A stretch of DNA of 64,000 nt from Macrostomum lignano (Eukaryota), in contig NIVC01001286.1 of NCBI GenBank assembly GCA_002269645.1, positions 1 through 64,000 of the forward strand, in the 5' to 3' direction. Positions 25,439 through 53,850 of this stretch are shown here, in pieces; position 1 is the stretch's first letter; every line of letters starts with the position of its first letter. A program made the translations under genes and the position numbers. Below the pieces are notes generated by a model that saw only the letters and a list, made by a program, of their open reading frames with translations, had not been told where the DNA came from and made no database searches.

Positions 25439-28350
25439 ATGCACATAATCACTAATGTGATACCCGTAGCTATTCTCTTGTGCAGTTGTCAGACGAAAGG
25501 AGTGCAAGGTAAAGGTTTTCTTTCAGGAATAAGGAACATTCCTAATCATACAGTATTCCTATCAAAACTTTGCCGGGGGTTTGAATGTATGAATTTAAAA
25601 TCGCTTTTCTGTCGATTTAGGCACCTGCAGTAGTGTCGACTACCGCGAGATTGAAGGCCCGTTCTACCTCAGCCCGCTTATCAGCACCGAAGTGATCAAC
25701 ATCTCAGGTGTGAAAAATGTGAACAACTGCATGATGCTATGCCGAATCAAAGGCTGTTCAGTGATCGTTGCCATGACGACGACCTCGACTGTTTGTCGAC
25801 TCTTAATATTGAAGGGAATTTCTCTGTCAAACACGATACTGGATTCTCCATCAGCTGTGGGATCAGAGGCTGGATCGCAGGTGTTGGTCAACGCCGACAT
25901 TAATGCGACTTTGGCTGCTATGATCAATAATGAGACGTTCACATGGCTCAGTGAGTTGTGCTGCACTAGTATTACCATACACACTAACCGATTACTCAAT
26001 CCTAGAGATCCTCACGCTTGGGCCGCAGTCTGTCTGTCTGTCTGTCTGTCTGTCTGTCTGTCTGTCTGTCTGTCTGTCTGTCTGTCTGTCTGTCTGTCTG
26101 TCTGTCTGTCTGTCTGTCTGTCTGTCTGTCTGTTTGTCTGTCTGTCTGTCTGTCTGTCTATCTGTCTGTCTGTCTGTCTGTCTGTCTGTCTGTCTGTCTG
26201 TCTGTCTGTCTGTCTGTCTGTCTGTCTGTCTGTCTGTCTGTCGTCTGTCTGTCTGTCTGTGCGTCTGTCTGTCTGTCTGTCTGTCTGTCTGTCTGTCTGT
26301 CTGTCTGTCTGTCTGTCTGTCTGTCTGTCTGTCTGTCTGTCTGTCTGTCTGTATGTATGTATGTCTCTCTGTCTGTCTGTCTATCTTAATTGCTCTTGTT
26401 TGTTCGGAGCAAAATCATTGTTTTATTCACTGTACTAATGCACCCTTCCTTATGACTACTAGCTATTGTTTTATGACTGTAATGTCGATTGATGACTATA
26501 TTCTTGTCTTATGACTGTTATATCTAGAAAGTCACTACGCGATTTACTAAGCGAGTTCCAGACAGCAGCACTGGCCGAATCGGGAGCATCCAGTTGGTGA
26601 ACATCACCCTCACTGGCTGCTACCGCATCGAGGTCGCCGGAGCCAGAGGCGGCGATAACATATACCGGTTCACAGTCGGTGGCAACGGGTCCTGGATTGC
26701 TGGCAGCTTCAACCTGACAGCTGGCACTCAGCTGGCCATCGTGGTCGGACAGGCTGGCGGCTCGGTGCATAGTTACGACACGAGGGACTGCGGCAGCGGT
26801 GGCGGAGGAGGCAGCTTTGTGTATGAGATTGCGGACGAGCACCTTCTAATTGCAGCTGGTGGTGGCGGCGGCTCAAGCCGAGGTAAAAATGGTAAGTAAA
26901 ATAAAACGAGAAAAAAATCTTTTAAGCTTTGAGGAGAGAGATGTGGAGTTATTAAAATGCACCGCAAAAGGCACCACCAACAACAAATACGTGGACAAGT
27001 CGTAGTCTCGCGGCTTAGGCTACTGGTTTTATCTACTTTAGTGTTTAAAATTCTAGTGGATTATCTGGTAGGTTGCTGCCACCAGGCTTCCTGATTTCCC
27101 TAATCCTAGTAGTTTAGCGATCAAAGGAACAACGCAGGAAACCGAAAATAACAAATTTTATTACTCCAAAGTTGTAAAACGAAAAAAATGATTAGCATGC
27201 AATAGTTCTTACAGTTAATTTGGTGCAAATATTAGTGGGCAATGACTACCCATTTTGTGCCCTGTTAGCGGCAATGACTACCTTTCTAACAGTGTTTACT
27301 TATTCCCTAAAACTTCCCCGCCTCTTACCTACTTTCTTTCTTGGTCTTGTTTCAGTTAAGACTAACTTCCAAGGCGCTTTTTCCCCGAGTCTCAACTGCT
27401 TGATAGTTATAAAGAAACCCAAAATTCGCGATCTACCCCCGCCCTAATTATTTTCCCTAGTTAAAACTACAGTAGTGTAAAAGCCAAAGGGCCGTATGCA
27501 GAAAGCTCTGTCTAGGGTAGTCCGGTCTTGAAAAGCTAGTCTGGACTTGGATTTTGTATGCAGAAACACAAAGTTAGACCGGTCTACTATAGACAGAACT
27601 ATGCTAGCTGGACCATAGACTATAGACTGAACTACCCAAGTCCGGACTAACTAGTCTGGACTAGGCTTTCTGCATACGGCCCTATGCCCTGCTACATACG
27701 CTACCAGTCCGGGTCCTTAGAAAGCAGCGTCAAAAAAGTCTAAAAGAGTTACTGAACTTTTTGAATAAAAAATAAAATTTTCATGGCCTCTGTGGCGTAT
27801 CTATTCGGAAAGTAGTTTAATTAATTATTGATCATAATTTACAGCTCTGCCGGGAGAAGACACAGTCAATGGAAGCGATTCAGTCGCAAAATTGCCAGAT
27901 ACGATAGGATTTGGAGGTGTCAACGGTCATCCCGGCTACAACGAACCCTGGAGGACTGGTGATAGAGGAACTCACGGCGGCTGCGGCGCCGGCTGGCTTG
28001 GCAGCGCCGTCAACCCGAGGCGAAACTCCAGCGACGGCGAGCGAGGCGGCGGTCTAGCCGATGACTGGGTCGGCGGGGAGGCTGGAATCGGTGGCACTGG
28101 CGACGGCGGATTTGGCGGAGGCGGCGGAGGCGGCGGCATGGAGCTGGACGGATCGAAGAACGGAGCCGGCGGCGGAGGCGGCGGCTTCAGCGGCGGTGGC
28201 GCTGGAGTGGGTGGATCCAATTCCGGAGGCGGAGGCGGCTCGTTCTGCGGCGGCAGCGACTGCTCGGCCATCGCTGGTGGGAATTCCTTCAGCGAGCACG
28301 GCTTTGTTGTGCTGCGCATGCAGGCTTTATTTGCCGACAAATGCAACTAA
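25439..28350 (+). CDS. Secreted PAN/Apple-like + ALK/LTK-type glycine-rich-domain protein, paralog A; exons 25439-25508, 25621-25950, 26562-26891, 27845-28350 (411 aa)
   Basis: Signal-like [23 protein letters not shown]; [12 protein letters not shown]...VCRL module; [11 protein letters not shown]...[18 protein letters not shown]...GGGGGSFVY...[10 protein letters not shown]; HGGCGAGW; GGFGGGGGG; GGGGGFSGG. Phase-1 GT-AG introns, 1236 nt in frame. Confidence 0.85.
26027..26385. repeat. (TCTG)n microsatellite in intron 2 of paralog A
   Basis: Direct reading. Confidence 0.97.
27489..27682. mobile_element. MITE with GGGCC termini (PIF/Harbinger-like) in intron 3 of paralog A
   Basis: TIRs GGGCCGTATGCAGAAAGC / GCTTTCTGCATACGGCCC; no clear TSD. 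Confidence 0.7.
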
Positions 28351-29019
28351 ATTCAAACGGACGCGGCTTACGCTCTAAACAGAAGTGCCCTTCAAATCGG
28401 TGTATCAAACCCTATCGTTTCGTCGAGACTATCTCAACCGATATTTCTTTTCCTTGGTCGGTGGAAAAATTGTTTTACTGGCTTCTCTACATTCCGATTG
28501 TTGCGAATGAAAACCAAATTTGGAAACGGCCTTAGATTTTGCTAGTTGCCGGATCTGAGGAAGTCGATATTGAAAGCGGTGAACGTGGATGCGCAGTTAT
28601 CGGCTTTCTATAGAATAGTTTTTTTAATCTGCTCTTTGTTCATTCGAATAAATAATAAAAAACAACGCGGGTGATGAAAGGCTCGGTAAACTGGTCGGCA
28701 TTGTCTTCTTTTGTTCGGCATGATTAAAAAATTGACTTCCTACCTGACTACTCAGGCTTTCTGAGTGGTCTTTTTTATTTTGTGTTTCCATTGTTCCAAG
28801 CTTCCGTTAGACGCAATCTATACTACAGAATGCGACAGTTTTTTTTCAAACGAAGTCACTCACAGGTTCTGCTAGGAAGAAGGTGTGGACTTTTCCACCT
28901 AAGTCTTGCTTTCACACCTCTATGTCAGGTGGCTTCAATGCACAGAGAGAAGTGGGCCCTCGACTGTCGGCAATCCCCTGTCCCTTCCCCGCCCGCTGCA
29001 CGGCCCGGCCCTTATAGCT

Positions 29020-29240
29020 GTTTGTGTTCATCCACAGGTTCATCAGGGTGGTAACCAGAGTGGCCCTCTTGGGTCAAAGGCCGCTTTCTCAGGCGTGGCT
29101 ATCTCCAGGAAAAAATCTGTCGTGGGGAATGCCCATTCTGCATCTCCGACGTTAAGAATGCGGAGCACTTCATCTGGGAATGTCCAACCTTTTGACCTGC
29201 CCGCCTGGGAATGGCTCGTTTCTGCCCGAGCAAGCCTATC
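29020..29240 (+). mobile_element. Probable 3' fragment of a non-LTR retrotransposon ORF2 (CCHC knuckle)
   Basis: Frame KGRFLRRGYLQEKICRGECPFCISDVKNAEHFIWECPTF gives C-x2-C-x7-H-x4-C; no RT seen. Confidence 0.45.
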
Positions 29241-52500: not shown

Positions 52501-53609
52501 GACTGAATTGGAAGAGATCGACCAACTGCGTGTGGAGCCATGCATCAAACAAAAAAAATAACTCGAAGACGATGTCAGTTGCGATTACCAAAAAACGTTA
52601 CGAACTACGAACCTTACTCTCTGGTCTTTGAAACGGATTTTTTGAAACTGACCGTACCTTCGATTTCTAATAAATTGAGTAGAAGGAACTAGGTTCCCAT
52701 TCATATGCTCATGGGTGTTTTTAGCACCCATGAACCGGATTGTGTCGCATCAAAATCATTGAATCTTAACTAGACCATTAGTGACTTTTGTTTATTTCAC
52801 CGAACAGAAAGAAAAATATCGTTATGTAGAGCCGACAGATACAAAACCATTCGTATATGTTTTCTATTCTGCAAATACTCACTCATGTATTGCCTAACAG
52901 GATTAGGTATAGACACAATATTGATTAGGTAAATGTAGGTACTCTTCAACAGGTATAAAGTCCCAACCCCCAAATGACGCTGTTATTCGACACGCAGTAG
53001 ATAACCTGATGCCACTGTCGATGATGCCGCCCCAAAAGTTCATCAACCGATCGGATGACTAGGAAGCCATACTAAATGACTTTAGTACTTTTGCATACTA
53101 AATGACCAAGACTAGACTCTACCGAATAGCCATACTGAACAGCTAGAACTAAACTCTTGCAAGATTTCCGCACCACTCTATACTTTCTTCTTATCAGTAG
53201 ATGAACATTGGCACACGGTTTAGGGATAGTGACGGGACAAGGACAGGTAAATGTCCTTAACAGGATTAGTATGAACTGGACACCCGGTCACAGCAAATCC
53301 TGGGAAATGAACTTGAGGATTCCCTCGCCAAGTAGGGCAGCAACCCAGACAACAACCATTGTCTTGTGAGGCTACCTATGCCTACTCTCAAACCTTTCCC
53401 TGAGGAATTAGGCAAGCAGCAGGAATGATCAGCGTGTCTTCCTCTGGCGCCAAAGTGCCGAGGTTCGATTTTGTGCTCAGAGATCGTTCAAGAAAATTCG
53501 TCTTGCGGCAATTGTCGTGCAATACACGCCCCTGAGGGTCAACACTCAAGGAGCAAAGTGTGTACTTGCCTGACAATCATATATTCAGTGGCGCTGTACA
53601 CCTTGTGCG

Positions 53610-53850
53610 AGCATTTGCCTACAATTGCGCGTGAGTGCTTAAAGTCAGCAGAGGCGAAACTGCCGCGACAGCGAGCGAGGTGGCAGTCTGACCGATAACT
53701 GGGCCCGCGGCAGAGCTGGAGACGGCTACACCACGGCAACGGCAGATTCGGCGGCGTCTTCAGCGGAGTTGACGCTACGCTTAGGTCGGGGGGAAAGCAA
53801 ACCGATCGTGACTTATTCTGCATAAGCAACGGCTGCACCACCATTTCTGT
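53610..53850 (+). pseudogene. Degenerate relic of the glycine-rich exon 4
   Basis: GAGGCGAAACT..CGACAGCGAGCGAGGTGGCAGTCT...GGCAGAGCTGGAGACGGCT...GGCAGATTCGGCGGC...AACGGCTGCACCACCATT matches exon 4 of C and D, with deletions. Confidence 0.7.

Follow-up and report, generated by a model that had tools for sequence, protein, structure and literature searches.

The 64,000 nt window analysed here (positions 1 to 64,000 of Macrostomum lignano contig NIVC01001286.1) contains three intact genes, designated A, C and D, whose products lack a kinase and end in the glycine-rich domain (GRD) that serves as the ligand-binding domain of the receptor kinases ALK and LTK. This domain is usually treated as a peculiarity of these two receptors; here it terminates small, probably secreted proteins of a flatworm, and there are relatives in cnidarians, in a choanoflagellate, in bacteria and in phages, which suggests that the ALK ectodomain has its origin in a far broader family of extracellular binding modules. 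The three proteins are probably secreted, N-glycosylated, two-module binding proteins of ~390 aa in their mature form, belonging to an old kinase-less family with a C-terminal GRD, rather than being cut-down versions of ALK.

The models for genes A, C and D were rebuilt by hand, and they confirm the description in an earlier note on this DNA of three intact four-exon genes on the + strand with the same intron positions and phases (Table 1). The predicted products are 411 aa (A), 410 aa (C) and 413 aa (D) long, all introns are in phase 1 at homologous positions, and the splice sites are GT-AG with the exception of a GC donor at intron 3 of gene C. Each gene has its own ATG and its own hydrophobic exon in the same relative place. 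When the window was searched with A by tblastn the other copies matched with E-values between 1e-51 and 1e-116, and DNA similarity between the copies is restricted to the exons. The exact spliced proteins are absent from a collection of 15 billion proteins, and hence no independent model there backs the gene models.

Table 1. Coordinates of the PAN-GRD genes, gene copies and fragments in the window.
Feature	Coordinates	Strand	Content
Gene A exon 1	25439..25508	+	ATG, signal-peptide-like hydrophobic N-terminus, phase-1 GT donor
Gene A exon 2	25621..25950	+	PAN/apple-like module: C26 plus C-x3-C-x4-C-x12-C core
Gene A exon 3	26562..26891	+	GRD, first half
Gene A exon 4	27845..28350	+	GRD, second half, and stop codon
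Gene B	40134..41353	+	Truncated copy, second subfamily; putative exons 40134-40176, 40267-40617, 40719-41027, 41115-41353
Gene C exon 1	42872..42935	+	Signal-peptide-like
Gene C exon 2	43023..43355	+	PAN-like module
Gene C exon 3	43733..44065	+	GRD, first half; followed by GC donor (GCAAGT)
Gene C exon 4	46610..47112	+	GRD, second half, and stop
Gene D exon 1	50508..50580	+	Signal-peptide-like
Gene D exon 2	50865..51194	+	PAN-like module
Gene D exon 3	51266..51601	+	GRD, first half
Gene D exon 4	51998..52500	+	GRD, second half, and stop
Relic	53646..53850	+	Decayed, frameshifted exon-4 fragment (SERGGSLTDNWARGRAGDG…)

The C-terminal 280 aa of the three proteins form an ALK/LTK-type GRD, which by profile search and predicted fold is homologous to the TNF-like plus glycine-rich supradomain of those receptors, a TNF-like β-sandwich into which a glycine-rich subdomain is inserted. 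A profile built from 50 family members and compared with 177,635 PDB sequences matches only ALK (E = 3.8e-11), SCD-2 (8e-9) and LTK (3.5e-4). The GRD part of the AlphaFold2 model has block-mean pLDDT values of 67–97, mostly above 75, and in a Foldseek search of the PDB with this model the top 21 matches are all ALK/LTK GRD/TG structures (E-values of 1.7e-11 to 4e-6, target TM up to 0.60), with the next PDB match at E = 0.05. The identification of this part as an ALK/LTK-type domain in the earlier note is thus supported by both sequence profile and fold, and in the HMMER alignment each motif of its series finds its counterpart in human ALK. The Pfam model for the domain (PF12810) gave a divided answer when applied as the note had proposed, in that the whole D protein scores 26.1 bits, above the gathering score of 24.5 bits, and A (12.7 bits) and C (12.4 bits) fall below it, their scores being lowered by the composition-bias correction; close homologues of A, C and D pass. 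There are about 12–13 conserved glycine-rich stretches, and amino acid variation clusters in the loops between the stems (A residues ~166–172, 200–210, 238–263 and 364–369). No positive selection is seen in these loops, and pN is lower than pS almost everywhere.

The N-terminal part of the proteins appears to be PAN-like. The cysteine core (C-x3-C-x4-C-x12-C) is unchanged in 13 sequences and lines up with that of coral PAN_1 domains above the Pfam threshold, two M. lignano paralogues (P0002 and P0003) are named 'Apple domain-containing' in UniRef, and in P0124, another M. lignano relative, a PAN-like stretch reaches 23.5 bits where the cut-off is 21.4. A Pfam scan of A, C and D themselves, a comparison also proposed earlier, finds no PAN match at E ≤ 1. 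The predicted structure of the module (pLDDT 69) has a strand-helix-strand layout, and 13 of its 14 top Foldseek matches are PAN, apple or MANEC domains, the other being a ribosome chain, with E-values of 0.15–1, none of which reaches 0.001. These matches are led by the SML-2 apple lectin, plasminogen PAp (prob 0.97), MANEC/HAI-1 and the FXI/prekallikrein apple domains, with WSC lower. The shared cysteines and these weak fold matches support the assignment of a four-cysteine PAN/Apple-like module made from the sequence alone.

Secretion of A, C and D is probable, judging from the hydrophobic N-terminus encoded on its own exon in each gene (assessed by hydrophobicity only), and the proteins are probably N-glycosylated, with seven sequons as well as 11 cysteines conserved among the three. 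There is no hydrophobic window after the GRD that could be a transmembrane segment, and Pfam scans find neither a kinase domain nor the EGF-like domain that follows the GRD in ALK/LTK receptors nor the MAM and LDLa domains of ALK. The stop codons lie 10–15 aa past the last predicted strand and coincide with the positions where the coral and jellyfish homologues have their C-termini, and the stop is at the natural end of the domain, in agreement with the initial observation that no transmembrane segment or kinase follows.

The architecture of A, C and D is already present in databases, where coral and jellyfish proteins with a signal peptide, PAN_1 and PF12810 are to be found, and the flatworm genes are new members of a widespread, uncharacterised family. 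As anticipated, no characterised family with a PAN-GRD architecture was found in the literature. Examples of the cnidarian proteins are Stylophora pistillata AWC38_SpisGene21703 (456 aa), Porites harrisoni ABFA07_017308 (450 aa) and Rhopilema esculentum EP00795_P000383 (421 aa), all uncharacterised and carrying automatic names such as 'loricrin-like' and 'receptor protein-tyrosine kinase'. These have the same order as the flatworm proteins, with a signal peptide (judged by hydrophobicity in the flatworm proteins), a PAN domain with the same four cysteines and a GRD that ends the protein, are likewise without a transmembrane segment or kinase, and show 38–47% identity over the GRD (E-values of 1e-24 to 1e-29). 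There are departures, in that the coral PAN domain passes the Pfam PAN_1 threshold whereas the flatworm module does not, the coral proteins have a longer linker (with EGF inserts in some) and a ~20 aa insertion in the GRD, and a coral-type GRD in one Tara contig is called as a single uninterrupted open reading frame, whereas the flatworm genes have four exons.

Other non-kinase proteins with PF12810 include a Nematostella EGF-GRD 'loricrin' (XP_048576998), a Sanderia protein with six EGF domains, a C-type lectin domain and a GRD, Monosiga brevicollis A9V5Y3 with five GRDs, and a Bacteroidota-type GRD-Ig-T9SS protein. The GRD is an extracellular module, as it probably is in A, C and D, mostly C-terminal, and placed beside adhesion or recognition domains (EGF, C-type lectin, Ig or T9SS sorting domains), although these proteins vary in partner domains, in copy number and in size, and no function has been demonstrated for any of them. 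C-terminal GRDs with conserved glycine stems and variable loops are also present in phage tail-fibre and adhesin tips and in uncharacterised phage GRD proteins; predicted phage structures match at E-values down to 1e-16, and A0A2H4JH33 matches with a TM of 0.65 and an rmsd of 3.2 Å. In cyanophage Pam3 the tail-fibre tip protein gp24 (PDB 7YFW) has a TNF-like plus GRD structure to which receptor recognition is assigned, and a structural similarity to the ALK GRD of C. elegans is reported for it (PMC9608196); it has also been compared in the literature with S16 gp38. The phage fibres are, however, trimeric and attached via N-terminal helical or fibre domains, a PAN module is present in the flatworm proteins, and the solved Pam3 fibre is a weak match to the flatworm model (E = 0.05).

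The ALK/LTK GRDs (PDB 7LRZ, 7NX3, 7NX0, 7LIR) are the sole significant PDB matches of the family, whether by profile or by predicted fold, and motifs such as GAxGG, FNL, IVVGQxG and GGGGGFSGG are shared, but identity is only 22–25%, and human ALK gets only 46 bits from the family profile. With a near-identical profile a bacterial T9SS protein reaches 124 bits, a choanoflagellate protein 379 and a Nematostella EGF-GRD protein 421, and phage proteins match the predicted model better than ALK does (E-values of 1e-16 to 3e-14). With the cnidarian, choanoflagellate, bacterial and phage GRDs so much closer, we reject a derivation of A, C and D from ALK; they have a domain in common with ALK/LTK without belonging to the receptor family. 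The suggestion in the earlier note that these are ALK-like ectodomains or decoys, which implies an origin in ALK or a functional tie to it, is not supported for the same reason. That a free GRD would compete with a flatworm ALK receptor, or present an ALK-type ligand to it, accords with its being the ligand-binding domain of ALK/LTK, with fold and motif series in common, but we regard such a soluble decoy or carrier as improbable, given the closer non-receptor GRDs, the lack of an EGF-like domain following the GRD, and the numerous M. lignano paralogues with variable loops. ALKAL ligands are not known outside vertebrates, and the invertebrate ALKs have unrelated ligands, Jeb and HEN-1, both of which also count against it. 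A structural role is rather unlikely too, although it deserves more weight than the decoy; the proteins would then be components of secreted gland material (glue, mucus, rhabdite, eggshell or other extracellular matrix), which a rigid glycine lattice and the PAN module would build or cross-link instead of recognising one specific target. Glycine content (22% of the whole protein, about 30% of the GRD), a secreted type of architecture, the multi-copy nature of the family, the mosaic matrix-type cnidarian relatives with EGF repeats, and loops without positive selection are all in its favor. However, the glycine-rich part is a compact folded domain of high predicted confidence and not a low-complexity repeat, the proteins are small with one GRD each, and the characterised examples of the fold that we found, those of ALK/LTK and of the tip of the phage fibre, are domains that bind.

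It is also quite improbable, slightly more so than the decoy, that the four-exon models are wrong and that the exons belong to larger genes or to a transcript reaching neighboring kinases. UniProt A0A1I8I814 (618 aa) does join exons 2–4 of gene A to upstream sequence, and there are protein kinase genes in the window at 35.2–36.1 kb (+), 55.8–57.3 kb (-) and 57.9–59.5 kb (+). But A0A1I8I814 takes in a 24-bp minisatellite as well as a piece located 7 kb upstream, and its acceptor removes the cysteine conserved in A, C and D; the independent start and hydrophobic exon of each gene and the correspondence of the stops with the cnidarian C-termini point the same way. The kinases are of the Ser/Thr type (HRDxKxxN motifs) with their own long open reading frames and no transmembrane segments, and a DEG/ENaC gene lies between A and the first of them. 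As a practical matter, the public protein model of gene A is chimeric, and the protein collections searched contain nothing that corresponds to C or D. Least plausible is a reading of the copies as pseudogenes in decay that now lack a function. There is a truncated copy, a relic, and the non-canonical donor in C, but the reading frames of A, C and D are open over 1.2 kb, the conserved cysteines and sequons are retained, and in exon 4 the C branch has N/S = 25/16, below neutral. Pairwise dN/dS among the three is 0.33–0.41, and A, C and D are under purifying selection.

Returning to the two-module binding proteins that we favor, the N-terminal module would be a PAN/apple-like domain and the C-terminal one a TNF-like β-sandwich with a lattice of polyglycine-II-type stems, the fold predicted to be shared with the ligand-binding domain of ALK/LTK and with the tip by which some phage tail fibres bind their receptors. 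The family is shared with cnidarians, in which it takes PAN-GRD, EGF-GRD and EGF-lectin-GRD forms. The most likely mechanism is that A, C and D would serve in recognition or adhesion, either in soluble form or associated with matrix, and that their target, a carbohydrate or a protein, would be bound by the PAN module together with the variable loops that separate the conserved glycine stems. More tentatively, PAN-GRD proteins may be an ancient soluble recognition or adhesion family of cnidarians and bilaterians that uses the TNF-like/polyglycine tip with which phages recognise their hosts, with the ALK/LTK domain a later recruit and the Macrostomum cluster diversifying its inter-stem loops for target specificity (e.g. 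towards microbes or mucus/matrix glycans), a doubtful scheme. With RNAi and transgenesis available, M. lignano is a tractable animal in which to ask what a free GRD binds.

The remaining copies illustrate how the cluster may have evolved. Although described as a tandem family, the genes are clustered but do not form a strict tandem array, with the DEG/ENaC channel gene (31308–33338) and the first Ser/Thr-type kinase gene (35203–36112) both located between A and B. The divergence between intact copies (dS 0.4–0.8), together with one truncated copy and one relic, fits birth-and-death better than the expansion initially envisaged, and the local cluster would reflect duplication along with divergence and decay. 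Of two relics noted earlier only one was found, and across some 105 nt its DNA is 76–81% identical to that of A, C and D. The broken state of gene B is borne out; it can be spliced into a 313-aa open reading frame in which the IVVGQ motif has a 4-aa deletion, homology stops after GERGGSLAD (~41332), and the domain lacks its final ~105 aa. Gene B is closest to the 'Apple domain-containing' paralogues P0002 and P0003.

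The window is eukaryotic DNA that contains spliced genes and is rich in mini- and microsatellites, and a tblastn search of it with the protein of gene A recovers the further copies with E values of 1e-51 to 1e-116. Three of these genes (A, C and D) are intact and have four exons each, and the lengths of the rebuilt proteins bear out the range of 410–413 aa proposed in the earlier note. In each gene all three introns are in phase 1 and lie at homologous codons, and the splice sites are GT-AG except at intron 3 of gene C, which has a GC donor (GCAAGT) with no frame-keeping GT close to it. 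Alignment of the paralogues at the DNA level is limited to the exons (84–89% identity for A–C, 78–80% for A–D), and the proteins are 75% (A–C), 64% (A–D) and 62% (C–D) identical. Pairwise dS values are 0.41–0.82 with dN/dS ratios of 0.33–0.41, and on the C branch of exon 4, with D as outgroup, there are 25 non-synonymous and 16 synonymous changes, the non-synonymous being below the neutral expectation. By these measures A, C and D are old duplicates maintained by purifying selection. We regard it as very improbable that the gene models are wrong, and with the constraint on the coding sequence, that these are pseudogenes is scarcely credible. We note that a MITE-like dispersed repeat with an internal palindrome is present in two copies (96.6% identity), one between genes B and C and the other within the 2.5-kb intron 3 of C.

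Features of the window and their coordinates
Feature	Position	Strand	Remarks
Gene A, exons 1–4	25439–25508, 25621–25950, 26562–26891, 27845–28350	+	411 aa; hand-built from DNA
Gene C, exons 1–4	42872–42935, 43023–43355, 43733–44065, 46610–47112	+	410 aa; hand-built from DNA
Gene D, exons 1–4	50508–50580, 50865–51194, 51266–51601, 51998–52500	+	413 aa; hand-built from DNA
Gene B	40134–41353		Truncated copy, second subfamily; identity to P0002/P0003
Exon-4 relic	53646–53850		Frameshifted; tblastn/blastn
Low-pS stretch of exon 4	27960–28130, 46730–46900, 52120–52290, 41237–41331, 53651–53756		A, C, D, B and relic, respectively
DEG/ENaC gene	31308–33338	+	Amiloride-sensitive sodium channel (PF00858); 480-aa ORF and 103-aa C-terminal ORF, both matching the family
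Kinase gene	35203–36112	+	Pkinase match, HRDxKxxN motif, own ORF
Kinase gene	55788–57305	-	Pkinase match, HRDxKxxN motif, own ORF
Kinase gene	57895–59469	+	Pkinase match, HRDxKxxN motif, own ORF
tRNA pseudouridine synthase ORF	15308–16036, perhaps 18151–18510	-	Pfam match (PF01416)
44-bp satellite	1–7058		~160 copies, 91% match
(GTCT)n/(AGAC)n microsatellites	8956–9856, 26028–26386, 60572–61814		90–315 copies
24-bp minisatellite	24472–25077		Several frames open (PVPDHQLQ…)
Minisatellite arrays	10027–11418, 13069–14146, 16118–18090, 38056–39460, 53865–54694, 62332–62994		Periods 12–224 bp
~175–195-bp dispersed repeat	14849–15042, 29379–29551, 63641–63816		76–80% identity, one copy inverted
294-bp MITE-like repeat	42048–42341, 45777–46070

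Two other genes, the DEG/ENaC channel gene and a protein-kinase gene, separate A from B in the array, which also contains two broken copies. Gene B is 84% and 70% identical to the UniRef relatives P0002 and P0003, which are named ‘Apple domain-containing’, and about 48% identical to A. It has a spliceable ORF of 313 aa with the exon 2/3 and 3/4 junctions of the intact copies, but lacks four residues in the IVVGQ strand, and its homology ends past GERGGSLAD at ~41332 such that the final ~105 aa of the domain are absent. The other is a frameshifted fragment of exon 4; two such relics had been proposed, and permissive tblastn and blastn searches of the window found this one and no second. A glycine-rich tblastn match at 12001–12336 on the minus strand was rejected as a family member, being an 18-bp tandem repeat (GGETEA…) in another ORF. 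Synonymous divergence is very low in the central stretch of exon 4 ([10 protein letters not shown]…[13 protein letters not shown]), where pS among A, C and D is 0.06–0.2 compared to 0.4–0.8 elsewhere, and DNA identity there is 76–87% with B and the relic as well. Gene conversion or constraint at the nucleotide level could account for this.

UniRef A0A1I8I814 (M. lignano, 618 aa, ‘WSC domain-containing protein’) matches exons 2–4 of gene A at 100%, but we take the model to be chimeric, as it fuses these exons with a piece from 18166–18360, a translation of the 24-bp minisatellite (24.4–25.1 kb) and a middle piece of 66 aa that was not found in the window. It also enters exon 2 ten bases late, thereby losing a cysteine that is kept in A, C and D. 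The 18166–18360 piece is read from the plus strand and opposes the minus-strand ORF at 18151–18510. A0A1I8I814 is the sole database protein more than 50% identical to A, even though C (75%) and D (64%) both exceed that level, and none of the spliced A, B, C and D products has an exact counterpart in a collection of 15 billion proteins; C and D thus seem to lack annotation in the collection searched.

The C-terminal part of each protein is a glycine-rich domain (GRD) of the ALK/LTK type. As single sequences A and C score 12–13 bits against Pfam PF12810 (ALK_LTK_GRD) and D scores 26.1 bits (cut-off 24.5), and a profile of 50 family members searched against the PDB finds only the GRDs of ALK (E 3.8e-11), C. 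elegans SCD-2 (8e-9) and LTK (3.5e-4). The motif series read earlier as ALK-like does align with ALK in HMMER. An AlphaFold2 model was made from an alignment of 48 sequences for P0001, a UniRef entry 100% identical to gene A exons 2–4. Its block-mean pLDDT values in the GRD are 67–97 (mostly >75), and strands from both ends of the domain form a sandwich that encloses a long stretch lacking regular secondary structure. Significant matches of the model in the PDB are confined to 21 ALK/LTK GRD/TG chains (E 1.7e-11 to 4e-6, target TM ≤0.60), the next being a phage fibre (E 0.05). From the profile search, the HMMER alignment and the predicted fold, the domain assignment is sound. The glycine stems and sandwich strands are near-invariant among A, C and D, and substitutions and indels concentrate in a few inter-stem loops (A residues ~166–172, 200–210, 238–263 and 364–369), where a search for positive selection found none and no non-synonymous excess.

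The N-terminal module is encoded by exon 2, and in A, C and D it matches none of the Pfam PAN models. The equivalent domains of coral and jellyfish homologues pass PAN_1 (24–32 bits, cut-off 21.4), and four cysteines with the spacing C-x3-C-x4/5-C-x12-C are invariant in the alignment with them. A predicted model of the exon-2 peptide (pLDDT 69) has PAN-type folds as 13 of its 14 best matches, including the Sarcocystis SML-2 apple lectin, plasminogen PAp (probability 0.97), MANEC/HAI-1 and the FXI/prekallikrein apple domains; the remaining one is a ribosome chain, none has an E value below 0.15, and the WSC domains of Kremen and Wsc1 are further down the list. The evidence warrants the term ‘PAN-like’ and no more.

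The closest non-flatworm relatives are cnidarian proteins (E 1e-29 to 1e-21, 38–47% identity), among which those of Stylophora, Porites and Rhopilema have the exact order of signal peptide, PAN_1 and GRD, whereas others insert EGF domains. Many matches of ~300 aa in metagenomes are GRD-only ORFs (the one contig inspected is from a TARA sample). An exhaustive profile search gave 4,692 cluster representatives at E≤1e-3 (1,083 at E≤1e-10), many of them giant multi-GRD proteins, and the architectures include EGF-GRD in Nematostella, EGFx6-C-lectin-GRD in Sanderia, five GRDs in Monosiga brevicollis A9V5Y3, DUF285-GRD, and a bacterial GRD-Ig protein with a T9SS sorting domain; in most named or scanned relatives the GRD is the end of the protein. 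Near-identical family profiles score the Nematostella protein at 421 bits, Monosiga at 379, the T9SS protein at 124 and human ALK at only 46. Searched against predicted viral structures, the AlphaFold2 model finds closer matches in uncharacterised phage proteins than in ALK (E 1e-16 and 3e-14; TM 0.65, rmsd 3.2 Å), and a likeness to the C. elegans ALK GRD has been reported for the tail-fibre tip of cyanophage Pam3, which has a TNF-like and a glycine-rich domain and is assigned to receptor recognition (PMC9608196). A, C and D therefore belong to a broad extracellular GRD family shared with ALK/LTK at the domain level, and are not truncated ALKs.

Each of the three proteins has a hydrophobic N-terminal stretch on a separate exon, and seven N-glycosylation sequons and 11 cysteines are conserved. 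There is no hydrophobic segment C-terminal to the GRD, and the proteins stop directly after the final predicted strand and a short helix, where the cnidarian homologues also end. We rejected a GPI anchor because the C-terminal tail, of only ~10 aa, falls within that strand and helix in the prediction. From the DNA, nothing would favour splicing past these stops, and the three kinases in the window are not ALK-like (HRDxKxxN) and have their own ORFs. For A, C and D the analysis establishes the order of modules, their homology and the selective constraint, as well as the lack of a transmembrane segment and a kinase. Two of the kinase genes each consist of one long ORF (505 and 524 aa), and the one at 35203–36112 is divided between two ORFs that overlap in different frames, a pattern suggestive of a short intron or a frameshift; the kinases seem to form a second local family, interspersed among the GRD genes.

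PAN/apple domains bind carbohydrates or proteins, and the GRD binds cytokines in ALK/LTK; to our knowledge both are binding modules in every case studied. The GRD-type tip of phage fibres binds host receptors (PMC9608196). The proteins would enter the secretory pathway, be glycosylated and disulfide-bonded, and work extracellularly as binders, and we think it probable that they are secreted two-module recognition or adhesion factors. A structural role as gland material would share the secretion features and the glycine-rich sequence, and we consider it unlikely. A decoy for an ALK ligand, to which the ALK-type GRD without a kinase might point, seems distinctly improbable for proteins whose profiles lie so far from ALK. 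Databases already contain this architecture and the GRD family, under automatically assigned labels that mislead (‘receptor protein-tyrosine kinase’, ‘PE-PGRS’, ‘loricrin-like’, ‘WSC domain-containing’). Literature searches on Macrostomum with glycine-rich, PAN or ALK, on PF12810, on coral ‘loricrin-like’ proteins and on the accessions found no published study of these proteins, and what is new here is that further members of an already known, though uncharacterised, kind have been modelled correctly. The cluster is moderately interesting, chiefly for its place in a genetically tractable animal and its relevance to where the ALK ectodomain came from.

Among the repeats elsewhere in the window, a 44-bp satellite occupies the first 7 kb. 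The long (GTCT)n/(AGAC)n microsatellites, one of which is within intron 2 of gene A, give long spurious ‘CLSV’ ORFs, and the minisatellite arrays at 53.9–54.7 kb are directly 3′ of the relic and present in both orientations.
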